DNA of 64,000 nt from Auanema rhodensis (lineage: Eukaryota > Animalia > Nematoda), in the NCBI GenBank assembly GCA_964057225.1, contig OZ059895.1:17174001-17238000 (forward strand), given 5' to 3'. Under the pieces are notes generated by a model, which worked only from the letters and a program-made list of their open reading frames with translations, made no database searches and was not told the DNA's origin. The stretch's first letter is position 1. Each line of letters starts with the position of its first letter. Made by a program: the position numbers and the translations under genes. Below are positions 29,380 to 36,825 of this stretch, piece after piece.

Positions 29380-30210
29380 TGAGTGAATTCTGACTGATCT
29401 AATGCCTTAATATCCGTGTTTCGCGCCAAAACAAACCAATGGGCGGCGCCTATCTTAGCTATTGGGGTATTTCAAGAGGCTCAGAGAATGCCGGGTGAAA
29501 GAGTGTAAGATCTGAGAGAGTACAGACAGACGCCAACATCTTAGGTGTTCAAATGATGCTGTTAGTCCACTACCACAAACGCCACTTCTCTTGTGTAACC
29601 AAGGGTTCTTTACCCATGAGCATTGGCAAATGGCAACTTACCCTAGCCCAAACATAGTTTTGAATGATATAAGGACAAGATGCTGGAAGATGGAAAGATG
29701 AACGTCTGCTAATGGCAAGAGAATCGACATCTGCTGGCAATCACACAAACGTTCTGGTCAAAAGAAGGTAGACGAAACGTAAGTTGAGGTTATGACTAGA
29801 AGGAAGAGCAAACAACTCTTCTTATCTCTACATTCCGTTCGTCTCCTTTTAGATTAGACAAATTTGTTACATTCTAAATAGGATAACAACCAACAATTTC
29901 TAATACAACTGATATCGTCTTTTAAAAGTAGAAATGACCGTCTGGTGAGATTTGCTATAATGTTGTTTGTCTTCTTGAAATTCGAATATACGCTATTCAT
30001 CCCCACGATCCTTTTGTTTATTTCTCATCTCGAGCTTCATTAAGGCTTTCCTTAAGCATCTACTAATTTATGCATTTATACATATATCCTTAACCCTTTT
30101 AATGAAGACCTACTGGTCCCGATCGGAAGGGTTGTCCTGCGCATCAAATGGACGCAACGCGTGCACGCACGCGTTACCCCCTAGCCAGGGGTCAGAATAT
30201 CGATAACCAA
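29380..30210. promoter_or_regulatory. Divergent promoter region between hmg-1.1 and hrp-2
   Basis: E2F-type TTTCGCGCC (29419-29427), CCAAT/ATTGG boxes (~29436, ~29461), AACGCGTGC-ac-GCACGCGTT inverted repeat (~30156-30175), ATCGATA (~30199). Confidence 0.6.
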
Positions 30211-30346
30211 TCCCACTCCTTATGTATTCCTTTTCTGTTTTTTTTTCCAATTTTCAAATATTCTAACTATATTTCGCTTTTTTGTTTAATATTTTAATTA
30301 TGCATATTATTTTATATTATTTGTTTAAGGTTAGGCCATTGGAGTT

Positions 30347-33006
30347 ATGGCCGACGTAGAGATGCAGGAGGGTGCTACAGTTGAATCGGACAAAAAGCCA
30401 GAGGTTACTGAGAATGTTGAGGAAGTAAAGAACGAAGAAATGGACGCTAAGCCATCCGACGATTCTACTGAGGAAAAGAAGGAGAATCCAGCAGCTGCTA
30501 ATTCTGTGAGTGATAAATTTATCTTTTATGTTTTTTATTTTTTGTTTCTAGGTATATGCTAATAATGAAACCTTTTCCAAGCTTATCGCTCAGAATATGA
30601 AAGTTGGTGTTGCAGAAGCTTTAATGAAGCTTTTTGATACTGATTGTATGTCTATTGATGACGTTGATGAGCGAGCTGTAGAAATGCTAAATTCTTTTCC
30701 CGAAGAACACGGAATCTATATTTGTGACCAACTTCGGGTAAACATTTAATTATTTTGATGTTTTTTTACAAATATTATGTAGGAATCTATGTTATTTGGT
30801 GTGCAAAATAAGCCCCAATATCTCATGTCCCTTATGAGGAACTTTAGAGACAAAACCAGAAGTGTTGGAGCTGCTGCTGTAAGATTTATCAGTTTAATTT
30901 TTTAATTATCTAGTGTTTTAAAGGTTTTGCAAGGCCAACTCATTACCGGACCAGAACGATCAAAGATGACAGAAATCTTAGATAAAACTGGCTATACTCT
31001 AGAAATTACCGTTGGTCAACGAAAGTACGGAGGTCCACCACCTGAGTGGGAAGGGGCTATAACTGGACCCGCTGGTCAGGGCCACGAGGTTTTTATTCTT
31101 TAATTTTTTTTCCTAAAAGTTCCATTCAGATTTACATAGGACATATACCTCATGAACTTTTTGAAGACGCTCTCATTCCTCTGTTCGAGCAATGCGGCAA
31201 GATTTGGGATTTACGTTTGATGATGGACCCCATTACTGGAAGAAATCGTGGATATGCTTTCCTTACCTATTGTGAGAAGTCCTACGCCAGTGAAGCTGCT
31301 AAAAAGGTGTTTATTTTATTTTTTTCCCCTTGCGCGTTTGTTAGACTTGTGAGTATGGTGAGGTAGGTTAAGACTTATTCTTTTGATGTTGTTCTGGATA
31401 CCTTCTTTTGCGTGGACGTCTCTTGTCTGTTATCTATTCGCCACAGAGTTGTTCGAGTTTTGCACGGTTTTTGTCAACCTTTTATTTTATATTTTCAGTT
31501 TTTTTTTATAATATATATTCAAAAGTGCATTCTAATTTGCGCTAAACATATTCTAAAAACGCTGAAAACAAGCGAACAACAATCTGTGAATTTAGTTTGA
31601 TGGTCACGAAATTTCTCCCGGAAAAACGCTGAAAGTGAACGTCTCAGTTGCAAACACTCGCCTGTTCCTTGGCAACATTCCCAAGTCGAAATCTAAAGAC
31701 GAAATTCTTGAGGAGCTTAAAAAGCACGCAGGTGAATTCCACCGGCTCTTTGGAACCGATTTTTCTCACTTTTGCTAGAAGCTGGACAGTAGTCAACAAG
31801 GGCTTTCACTTGATATATGCTTCTAATTTATTCAAATTCAGATGGCGTGACTGATGTTATTGTCTACACGATCCCCGATGCTACTGATCGCCACAAGAAC
31901 CGTGGTTTCTGTTTTGTCGACTTCGTGGATCACAAGACAGCTTCGGATGCTAAAAGGAAAATCCAACAGCATAAAGTATATCACACTTTATAATCGTGAA
32001 GTAACAATTTGATTATAGATTCGTCCTTTCAATACTGACCTTGTTGTTGATTGGGCTGAACAACAAGACGAACCTGATGAGGATACCATGAGCAAGGTAA
32101 GCGTTTATACATATTGTAATTTCCCTAAATTTACAAATTTAGGTTAAAGTATTATATGTTCGTAATTTGCGAGAATGTGTTACTGAGGATAAACTTAAAG
32201 AAATATTCACTCCATATGGAGAAATAGAACGAATCAAGAAAATCAAGGATTATGCCTTCGTTCACTACAAAGATAGAGATGCTTGCTTGAAGGTAAATTG
32301 GTGTTATTCCTATAATTTTGAAAATGTTATCTTCAGGCTCTTGATGAGTGGGGCGGCAAAGAGTTGGAAGGAGTATGCATAGATTGCTCACTTGCTAAGC
32401 CTCAAACAGAAAAGAAAAAGAGACCGTCCCGTGGACGAGGATTTGGAAATACTACTAGCGGCCCTGGATATGGCACCCCAGCTGGACCTGGTCGTGGCAG
32501 AGCCAATAACATGTACCCAAACCAGTATAATTATCATTTTTTAAAATAGTATTTTACCTTATATTTTAGTCGTGGTGGCTTTGATGAAGGATACTACGGT
32601 GGTGGAGGTGGCGGAAGCTATGGTGACTATGGTGCACCATATGAAGGTTATGGCCACGGAGGTTTTGGAGGGCCAGGAGGATACGGTGCTCCTATGGGCT
32701 ACGGAAACTACGGCGGTGATGGTGGATATGGAGGAGGCTATGGCCAACATGGCGGTTTCGGCGGAGGATTTGGTGGCGGAAGTTGGGGAGGAGGAAACCG
32801 CGGTGGCGGAGGAGGCCGCGGAGGACGAGGAGGAGGTGGAGGAGGCCCAGGATACAGAGGGTATTTGAAGAAAATCTAATAACTGATCAAAATCTTTTTT
32901 TTGTAGGCGTGGAAAACGACCTGGAGACCGAATGGGTGGACCCGCCTCTAAAAGGGATAACAGTGCTCCCGATTTCTCGGCTGATGTGAGCATGAGTTCT
33001 TTTTAG
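30347..33006 (+). CDS. hrp-2: hnRNP R/Q (SYNCRIP) homolog: acidic N-terminus, 3 RRMs, RGG/YG tail
   Basis: LEITVGQRKYGGPPPEW; IYIGHIPHELFEDALIPLFEQCGKIWDLRLMMDPITGRNRGYAF; NTRLFLGNIPKSKSKDEI; VKVLYVRNL; RGG tail; ends ADVSMSSF*. Confidence 0.93.
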
Positions 33007-33398
33007 TACAATAGAATCTCACTTAACCGTATAATTATTATTGAACATTTCATGCGAATCGGGGGTAGTCCAATGGTGTGTCTCCGCTGTTTAGTCTACT
33101 TTTGTTGTTATACTTTTGCATTCTTTGATTTATTCTTTACTATTGTCAATATTGTTCGTAGCCGAAGTTCGTACCGAGTTTCCTATTTATAATTTAAATT
33201 AAGCTTAAGCTTCTTAAATAACATTCATTGTTTTGCGGTTATTACCGCGTGATGATCGTGTCCTCCGTATCTCGTAAGTTGTTATTTATAATAATAAATA
33301 TTTCGAAGTCTTCATGTGTGATAATGCTGACGTTATAATACATTTACTTGCTTGTCTAATCATCATCATCAAAGCTTTTCTTTTTGAGTGAATGTAAT

Positions 33399-34316
33399 AT
33401 GTCTCTTAATGAAAAGGTTGTTGTCACAGGGCATCGAGCTGATAGGCTCGACAGCAGTAAGAAATATGATAGGTTAAAGATTTATAATACAACGTATATA
33501 CATAGGATTGTGTGATGTGATAGGGCAATTTTTATATGATGTGAGCCACATAGTAATTCATAGATTCGGAGGTTATACCGACGAGCATTTCCAAAGTGGG
33601 CATTTTGGGTTGATACCAGTTACAGTAAGATTTTCGGATTAAATATCCGAATGAAAGAAAAATTAATTTTAGAGATGCACTGACCATAGATTAGTAAATT
33701 ATCTGCAAAGATCCATTTCCGTCGTTCGAAATGCTTTGAAGCATCATCACCTGGAAAAGTTTGAAGGTTTATCTCACCTATCGGCTTTCAACAGAAAAAA
33801 CTTAAACATTTAGTTTGCATAGTGGATAATCAAGAAACTTCCCTGTTCTCTCTTAGGGTGTCAATTAAACAAGTTTCAAGTTTTCACAACGAACAACTGT
33901 TCGGTTTTGCTTCAATACATATAATTACGCTACATTTGCTTTCAGAAAAGCTTTAGATTCTCGTGTTGAAGATCTTCGGAAACGACTGTGTCCCGCTTTG
34001 CTAGCTCTACAAACCATGAAAATAGATGCGAATTTGAGAGAATCTCTAGAGAAAACTCGTGAGTTTGGAAAAACACAACTGATGTCAACTTTCCAGCTGT
34101 TCAGCTACTCGACCACGTATTCGACTATTGACTACAACATCTGATTCACACGGAATGAAAAAAACAGCAACTCCTCCATTTTATAATCATACGATGATAC
34201 CTTGGTCAGATCCGGTACAAAATGATTTCAACCAAGTTTCTTGTGTAATTTGTTTCATCATGCAATACTTTAATTTTCAGCTTGTATTCACTGCCTTCGT
34301 ATTAAAACAAACATAG
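33399..34316 (+). CDS. HORMA-domain protein, REV7/MAD2L2-like; 7 exons
   Basis: Spliced: MSLNEKVVVTGHRADRLDSRLCDVIGQFLYDVSHIVIHRFGGYTDEHFQSGHFGLIPVTRCTDHRLVNYLQRSISVVRNALKHHHLEKFEVCIVDNQETSLFSLRVSIK...PTRPRIRLLTT...MIPWSD...LVFTAFVLKQT*. Aligns without gaps to remembered human REV7 N-terminal half (DV..FL....H.I.....Y....FQ......PV.......L..Y.Q.....V...L.....EK..V.I.D). Confidence 0.75.
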
Positions 34317-36825
34317 AACGATCACGATATTCATTCTTCAGATGTTACACTTATATCTGTACCAACAATAAAAATATATAACAATATCTCTAAAAACATC
34401 GGGATCAATCGGGAGCGATTGCAGAGAAAAAAGGGGCGCCAATAGATGTTAACAGACGGCCAAAAAAAACACTACAATCTCAGTGAAGTGGTTAATAAAG
34501 ATGGTCTTGAACCACAATTAAAGACAAAGGAGTTCGATGTCTAACGCTCTAAAGTTGTACTAGTCTCTAACACATTTTGAAGGAGGTAGTGGAAAAGAAA
34601 GGATGATAACAGGATCTACCTGTGTTCGTGACTGATTACATCGGTTTAACCGATATTAAAATAGAGAAAAGAAAAAGGCAGAAAATGCCTGAAGGGGATA
34701 GAACCCGTCTGGGACAACAGCGAGTGACACACCTGAAAAAGATGAGCACATCACTCTCTGAACCCGGGAAGTACCGTATGATGGGATTTGGCTAAATACT
34801 ATGTACATTAGGGTTCTAGTATAATCTGGAGAGTAGTATAAACAATATGTGAAAAAACTTAAGATTTTGCAATATTAGGTACCAGGCCTACTTAAATAAG
34901 ATATACCAAGTTTCCAATAACAAAAGATCACCATATAATATACATAGACCCAAGATGTGAATAGAAGTTAACACCATCAAGCCGGAATCACAAGAAAACA
35001 CTAGATTATAGCAGTAAAACAACACCGCGTTTTGTACCGTGTGCAGGATAGCCAGCCAGAATGAGCATGCATATATTAGAGCATTTAGAGCAACGAAATC
35101 GTCGAACAACGCCACTGTTAAGACAACTTGCGCGCTTTTCATATTAATTTACCATACAAAACAATGGAAAGAATTAACGAACAAGTTGTCCGTTCAGCTC
35201 ACAAATAAAAAAAACGTGTTGACTAGCGTATGTTGCTATCTATTAGCTATATACAGTCTGCACTGCTCAGAGCCTGAACTGGAAATGTACAAAAAGCTGG
35301 TGACCCGACTGGTTCACAGGAGAGAAATGGGGCGAAGTATTAAGAAAAAGAAATTAGAAACAGCTGAACAATCGCGCAGCAAAACAAAACTTCATAATTT
35401 CATAATTGTTCAACTGTCGGATAAAGGGTAGACAACGATAATCCATGAGTGGGGAGGGGTATGGATGAATTTACCCGATCAAAGGTAGGGTCGATATCAC
35501 ACCATTAGGTTAACGTTATAAAGCGGAGAAGTGAGAAAATGGTAGAACGACCCAACCAAATACAATGACTGTAAGACGTGAGGAAAATTAAAATGAATCC
35601 AGGAAACTAGAAATCTCTATCATTTTTCATCACAAATTCCCTGAGGACTCGGCAATGTTAATAACAGAGATAACAATAAGTGGTTAGACGATATATACAT
35701 ACATACAATTCTTGCTCAAAGTTTTAGACAAATCTTTTCTCACGAGAATTTAAGGAATAAAAATGCAACTTATCACCTAGATCTAAAATAAAAAAAATTT
35801 TTCATACACCCCCCAGGGAGGGAATAAAAATATTTTGGATTTCGCAATTGTTGCTTCACTCAGTTCTTTCGTTTTCAAAAAATGAATGAGAAAAACATTT
35901 GTATAAATTCGTGGGCCAGAACTGTATATACATGTTGGTTATATATATATAGTATACTTGGATATGGAAAATGCTTAAAACGATCAAGATAAAATTTCCA
36001 AGAATAAACTAACTTTTCCGAATACCGAACTTTTTCAGTAAATAAACTGTGAAAGTTTACATTCGAAGGAGGGATGTAGAGGAAAATGGAGACGTGTCAA
36101 AAGAAATTTTAAAAATTCGAGAGACCGATCCATCTGGATAGTGTACCGTTAAAAATATGTTAGGATTAGGCTTTGAGAAAGACACAAGAAAAATATGGGA
36201 TAAATTGAAGACAAAAAAGATGCAATACCATACTAAGCCTAAGCAATATAGTCTTTAGTTGAAACTTTAACGATAGCTTTAGTATATGTTATTCTTATGT
36301 CTTTCTTCAAGGTAATCACTAACATTTGGTATATTACTAGGTATTTTAATGTGGTATCTTCTGCTGGTATTTGAAATATATTTCTGAAAGGGAGTGGTTG
36401 AAGTTTTAAGTTATTAACGAAGCGAAAAAGGTACCATAGTACACACTCGGGATTAAGGGCCTTCTAAAGTCGGTATTCGGAAAGGTTAATAAAATGAGAA
36501 ATATCGTTCAAAAAATATCGGTTACTCCAAACATTTGATACTATCGTTCACCGACATTTTTGTTCAATATATTTGTCCAAGTACATTATATAGCTATAGA
36601 AAATCAAGAACATTAAATGATTACTACTTGCTATACTCCTGCTCTAGTCATTCTAAAATGAGCCTCAAAAATTTCTGATTTAGACCGTTCGAATAATGAG
36701 ATGAACATATTAGGAGATAGAGGTAGATATTACAGAAAAGAACCATTAAAATATAATTAGAAAAAGCTACGAGAAATAAGAAAAGCAATCGTACAGAAAT
36801 GCGATTTCAGTAGAAATTCACCGTC

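Follow-up and report, generated by a model that had tools for sequence, protein, structure and literature searches.

The HORMA fold consists of three core helices on a beta-sheet and a mobile C-terminal safety belt. Among the described proteins with this fold, human REV7 (also called MAD2L2 or MAD2B; PDB 3ABD, 5O8K, 6BC8 and others), an accessory subunit of the translesion DNA polymerase zeta (Pol zeta), is the closest to the worm protein reported here, and it is likewise 211 amino acids long and made up of a single HORMA domain without tails. Drosophila rev7 (PolZ2), likewise a fast-evolving animal REV7, shares 29% of its residues with the human and 18% with the yeast protein (PMC7714529). 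It is annotated and its role in Pol zeta is documented, whereas public records give the worm protein neither a name nor a domain. MAD2 (human MAD2A, S. pombe Mad2, MDF-2 in worms) has the fold in common with the worm protein and is of similar size. The meiotic HORMADs of nematodes (HIM-3, HTP-1/2/3), a group that has expanded in this phylum to four members in C. elegans (PMC4657174), have the HORMA core in common, but they are longer and end in C-terminal tails with closure motifs.

Reviews of DNA repair in C. elegans include REV-1 and REV-3 and leave out REV7. The repair chapter of WormBook names REV-3 as conserved in the worm and does not mention REV7 (PMC9097270), and a KEGG-based table leaves the REV7 entry blank for C. 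elegans, and for the fly too, although the fly has rev7 (PMC6264785). The blank for the fly indicates that KEGG misses divergent members of the REV7 family. Our literature search found no paper pairing rev-7 with C. elegans, or MAD2L2 or rev-7 with nematodes. These two sources (PMC9097270, PMC6264785) agree with the supposition of the initial annotation that C. elegans is without a clearly recognised REV7.

Here, we describe a gene in a stretch of 64,000 nucleotides of nematode DNA (the window) that is expressed and encodes a 211-residue single-domain HORMA protein. We consider it, with moderate confidence, most likely to be the fast-evolving REV7/MAD2L2 orthologue of an Auanema-like rhabditid.

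An intact, spliced and expressed gene

The gene lies on the plus strand at 33399-34316, with its ATG at 33399-33401 and its TAG at 34314-34316. Transcript contigs come from a single study, of which four runs (X10-X13), presumed to be RNA, were used; about half of the words of the locus are present in each. Every run yields one spliced contig of 3.76-3.87 kb that agrees with the genomic DNA without a mismatch. In the contigs of all four runs, six introns (33457-33505, 33625-33672, 33767-33813, 33899-33945, 34059-34104 and 34236-34280) have been removed, each 45-49 nt long and with GT..AG ends. At one joint, 33766/33814, the contigs had been placed at 33764/33812, and the cut was shifted by +2. 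The seven exons measure 58, 119, 94, 85, 113, 131 and 36 nt, together 636 nt or 211 codons and a stop, with no internal stop codon. The locus is an intact, spliced and expressed protein-coding gene. Its 3' UTR is unspliced and extends beyond 34500 in the contigs.

The initial annotation had proposed seven exons between 33399 and 34316 and an intact reading frame, both of which the contigs confirm. Its length of about 200 residues did not stand, the correct value being 211. A GT at 34215 as donor of the last intron (joint 34214/34215) is ruled out by the contigs, which place the real donor at 34235 and thereby add seven residues. The contigs also rule out an alternative pair of splice sites for intron 4, with donor 33903 and acceptor 33951, in favour of 33898/33899 and 33945/33946.

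Similarity to REV7 and predicted fold

When exon 2 was searched with phmmer against the full protein library, a single cluster was returned, P0001, a protein of 211 amino acids that is 68% identical over residues 21-58. Its record, from Auanema sp. JU1783, reads "unnamed protein product" and has no precomputed Pfam domain. The seven exons of the window align with P0001 in order and ungapped, at 74, 69, 90, 74, 68, 74 and 64% identity. The P0001 locus (L001) has the same neighbours as the window in the same order and orientation, namely an ABC transporter (+), an HMG-box gene (-), an hnRNP Q gene (+) and the 211-aa gene (+). Window and L001 align collinearly, with about 72% of the DNA identical, and the introns interrupt the same codon positions. 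The window thus stems from a rhabditid that is near to Auanema sp. JU1783 but has diverged considerably from it. Over 207 complete codons, the amino-acid identity is 0.74, with a pN of 0.18 against a saturated pS of 0.81, so that the HORMA protein is under purifying selection.

The exons, all on the plus strand, differ in what they contribute and in how well they are conserved. The coding part of exon 1 (33399-33456) encodes residues 1-19 plus one nucleotide; its joint to exon 2, 33456/33506, is found in four of four runs, and it is 74% identical to P0001. Exon 2 (33506-33624, residues 20-59, 68-69% identity) covers the predicted region of helix alpha-A in the HORMA core and corresponds to residues 14-53 of human REV7 within a two-species profile described below. 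Exon 3 (33673-33766, residues 60-91) is the most highly conserved of all exons, with 90% identity, and encodes a tyrosine at the position of Tyr63 of human REV7. Exon 4 (33814-33898, residues 91-119, 74% identity) lies between the joints 33766/33814 and 33898/33946. The predicted region of helix alpha-C falls into exon 5 (33946-34058, residues 119-157), which is 68% identical and aligns ungapped to residues 120-156 of P0001. Exon 6 (34105-34235, residues 157-200, 74% identity) presumably encodes the safety-belt region, contains a conserved PW and is joined to exon 7 at 34235/34281. The coding part of exon 7 together with the TAG (34281-34316) accounts for residues 201-211, at 64% identity.

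Single exons, compared with Pfam and PDB, gave blanks or chance matches, and these searches were not significant because the exons encode only 27-43 residues each. All full-length comparisons therefore concern P0001, which is 74% identical to the window protein, the latter having entered only as separate exons. In a phmmer search of the PDB with P0001, the 15 top-ranking distinct sequences are without exception constructs of human REV7/MAD2B (E 6.3e-4 to 1.5e-2, 22.5-18 bits), with residues 18-119 of P0001 aligned to residues 12-115 of human REV7. MAD2A and S. pombe Mad2 follow with a weak alignment over residues 21-148 and E-values of 0.57-1.3 (11.7-12.9 bits, as against 22-27 bits for REV7). 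ATG101, p31comet and the meiotic HORMADs have no PDB match to P0001 at E up to 10.

A profile built from two species, that is from residues 16-120 of P0001 and exons 2, 3 and 4 of the window (profile A4), again picked out these 15 REV7 constructs, now at E 4.3e-5 to 4.7e-4 (26.7-23.3 bits), with MAD2A at E 1.2. Addition of the second species thus improved the REV7 score from an E-value of 6e-4 to 4e-5. Profile A4 aligns to residues 13-92 of human REV7 over 80 ungapped columns at about 25% identity, a value that is ordinary for the REV7 family, since fly rev7 reaches 29% (PMC7714529). The margin of REV7 over MAD2 is 10-14 bits for P0001 and profile A4, with about 14 bits for the profile. Judged by these PDB searches, with REV7 similarity assessed in the forward direction, the similarity to REV7 is significant and stands above that to every other HORMA family. 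Using a human sequence that agrees with the one in the PDB, the initial annotation had noted that about 75 residues align to human REV7 without gaps and that REV7 fits better than MAD2 or ATG101. Both points hold for P0001 and profile A4.

Sequence similarity to solved HORMA proteins is confined to the amino-terminal half of the protein. The C-terminal 100 or so residues of P0001, including the presumed safety belt, drew a blank against the PDB by sequence, and in this respect human REV7 differs: for its C-terminal half, with safety belt and REV1-binding strands, no counterpart could be detected in the worm sequence. In human REV7, Tyr63 and Trp171 reportedly hold the REV3 motif, as Hara and colleagues are said to have described in 2010. 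A tyrosine is present at the Tyr63 position in both worms. The conserved PW of exon 6 lies in the half without a sequence match to REV7, where human Trp171 is not confidently alignable. In Pfam, HORMA (PF02301) is the sole family matched by full-length P0001 at E up to 10. The match runs from residues 25-98 to profile positions 5-82, at the correct end of the profile, and scores 12.3-14.4 bits against a cut-off of 24 bits, a gathering score that is a criterion of detection and not a property of the protein. The length of the window frame (211 codons) and of P0001 (211 aa) fits the size of about 200-250 aa of REV7/MAD2L2 as HORMA-only proteins.

The structure model of P0001 in the ESM Atlas, an orthologue model on which the evidence for the fold rests, has a pTM of 0.70. 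Structurally, it comes closest to a chordate HORMA cluster of 212 aa, with a TM of 0.78/0.78 over 194 residues, and its neighbours by features (0.94) are HORMA clusters, among them one with the name MAD2B. For the C-terminal half alone, the model has a TM of 0.60 to the same chordate cluster, and feature scores of 0.87-0.88 to HORMA clusters, which are at the level of a lead only. AlphaFold2 models had low confidence, with a pLDDT of 36 for the 2-deep alignment and 35 for the single sequence, and can serve as no more than a hint. They place long helices at residues 13-40, 64-83 and 116-142, which we take to be where alpha-A to alpha-C of a HORMA domain lie. On the ESM Atlas model, the product is predicted to be a protein of the HORMA fold.

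Alternative readings and a possible role in Pol zeta

The narrow distribution in which relatives were detected bears on the alternative that fares best, a lineage-restricted HORMA paralogue. Descended from REV7, MAD2 or a meiotic HORMAD, it would have given up its service to Pol zeta and would bind different closure-motif partners, for example in Auanema's unusual meiosis. Word-index searches with whole P0001 (with E limits of 0.01 and 10) and with its residues 16-120 returned only P0001 itself, a metagenome scan returned no relative, and in the libraries searched by word-index, phmmer and metagenome scan no orthologue was detected in nematodes beyond Auanema. Relatives detectable in Auanema only would suit such a paralogue. 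The word-index blanks are weak evidence, because a match requires shared exact 5-mers and a score of at least about 29 bits, and human REV7 itself reaches only 22 bits. The paralogue would also be consistent with a gene that is the least conserved part of its locus (55-76% DNA identity, where the non-coding flanks reach 74-96%), with a safety-belt half that cannot be recognised by sequence, and with the expansion of meiotic HORMADs in nematodes. These points are countered by the PDB searches, in which REV7 is the sole significant match and HORMADs of any species are without a match at E up to 10. Structures of C. elegans meiotic HORMADs should be in the PDB. The size of the protein and its missing tail moreover suit REV7 and MAD2, but not the meiotic HORMADs, and the Tyr63 equivalent has been retained. 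We regard the paralogue as unlikely, and as the first rival to be reckoned with.

A related reading is that the protein derives from REV7 and has been repurposed. Room for changed partners is left by a safety-belt half that sequence searches do not recognise and by the fast evolution of the gene. REV-3 of this clade may lack REV7-binding motifs, and the fast-evolving safety belt would capture other closure-motif partners, for instance ones that control the germline or meiosis in Auanema, a lineage with three sexes. If this were true, Pol zeta of these worms would work without REV7 and the HORMA protein would have a new role. We think that such a change of function is improbable, more so than a paralogue.

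Less probable again is an orthologue of another small HORMA protein, that is p31comet/CMT-1, ATG101/EPG-9 or MAD2/MDF-2. These proteins have the fold in common with the worm protein and are similar in size, the p31comet family is highly divergent in worms, and an ATG101 cluster appears at rank 15, with a score of 0.77, among the ESM Atlas neighbours of the C-terminal half. Full-length P0001 nevertheless matches no Pfam family except HORMA, p31comet and ATG101 are without a PDB match at the same permissive threshold, and MAD2 remains 10-14 bits below REV7. MAD2 is well conserved in nematodes, and a true MAD2 orthologue would for this reason be expected to score far higher.

That the protein lies outside the HORMA family altogether, as an unrelated small conserved protein with a chance similarity to REV7, would agree with the Pfam score under the cut-off, the AlphaFold2 models without a confident fold and the modest E-values of 1e-4 to 1e-5, but it is very improbable in view of three partly independent lines that agree (PDB phmmer and profile searches, HORMA as sole Pfam match, ESM matches over 194 of 211 residues) and of a score that went up once the second species was added.

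We thus favour an orthologue of REV7, and the worm gene is most likely a previously unlabelled member of the known HORMA/REV7 family, to judge from its sequence. By analogy with that family, we infer a role in Pol zeta. The C-terminal safety belt of the worm protein would close around a short proline-containing motif of REV-3, which the window does not encode, and the closed protein and REV-3 would together give the Pol zeta translesion complex. Its outer face would bind REV-1, bridging Pol zeta to REV-1, and TRIP13/PCH-2 would reopen the HORMA protein.

A REV7 orthologue in these worms would mean either that the accessory subunit of Pol zeta has persisted in Rhabditina, too divergent for routine annotation, or that its loss is confined to some lineages. 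With both Auanema-type sequences as seeds, genomes of C. elegans, hookworms and further members of clade V can be searched by profile and by synteny, first of all in the region downstream of the hnRNP Q/hrp-2 orthologue. Whether worm Pol zeta has a REV7 would thereby become directly testable. The gain would be to close a gap in a pathway already known, and no new mechanism.

Surroundings of the HORMA gene

Upstream of the HORMA gene, the window contains at 27100-33006 an ABC transporter (+, C-terminal NBD at 28060-28640), an HMG-box gene (-, 28852-29241) and an hnRNP Q-like gene with RRM and RGG parts (+, 30347-33006). The 3' end and 3' UTR of the latter (33000-33300) are 86-96% identical to Auanema sp. 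JU1783, despite saturated synonymous sites next door. This 3' UTR is strongly constrained and perhaps autoregulatory. The AATAAA poly(A) signal of the hnRNP Q-like gene lies at 33293-33298 (+) and is conserved with its flank in Auanema sp. JU1783; contigs of the upstream transcript stop at 33263-33275.

The 5' leader or outron of the HORMA gene occupies 33334-33398 (+), and the contigs have their 5' ends at 33334, 33342, 33383 and 33387. A candidate trans-splice acceptor AG is found at 33387-33388, about 10 nt upstream of the ATG, and Auanema sp. JU1783 has TTCAG at the aligned site. Trans-splicing itself and a spliced leader were not seen. From the AATAAA to the candidate acceptor there are about 90 nt, a spacing that is typical for a nematode operon. 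The HORMA gene is probably the downstream gene of one operon with the hnRNP Q-like gene. The leader also holds a start-stop mini-uORF, ATGTAA (33392-33397), which ends 1 nt ahead of the main ATG; it reads GTGTAA in Auanema sp. JU1783 and so is not conserved.

Downstream, the contigs continue for about 2.9 kb beyond 34500, toward a minus-strand gene and through DNA with no clear ORF. In Auanema sp. JU1783, the corresponding position is occupied by a minus-strand gene of 137 aa. The 3.8-kb contigs are probably two convergent transcripts that were merged via overlapping 3' UTRs; we also considered a long bicistronic transcript as their source, but the merger with the convergent minus-strand transcript is more likely. 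Inside these contigs lies a non-coding block (34447-35330) that is 74-91% identical to Auanema sp. JU1783. As all six frames are conserved, the block is conserved as DNA or RNA and not as protein, and it is probably a long 3' UTR, either of the convergent minus-strand gene or of the HORMA gene. Elsewhere in the window, a full-length U6 spliceosomal RNA gene at 18258-18359 (+; 110 bits, E 8e-28) is the sole Rfam match at the gathering score.
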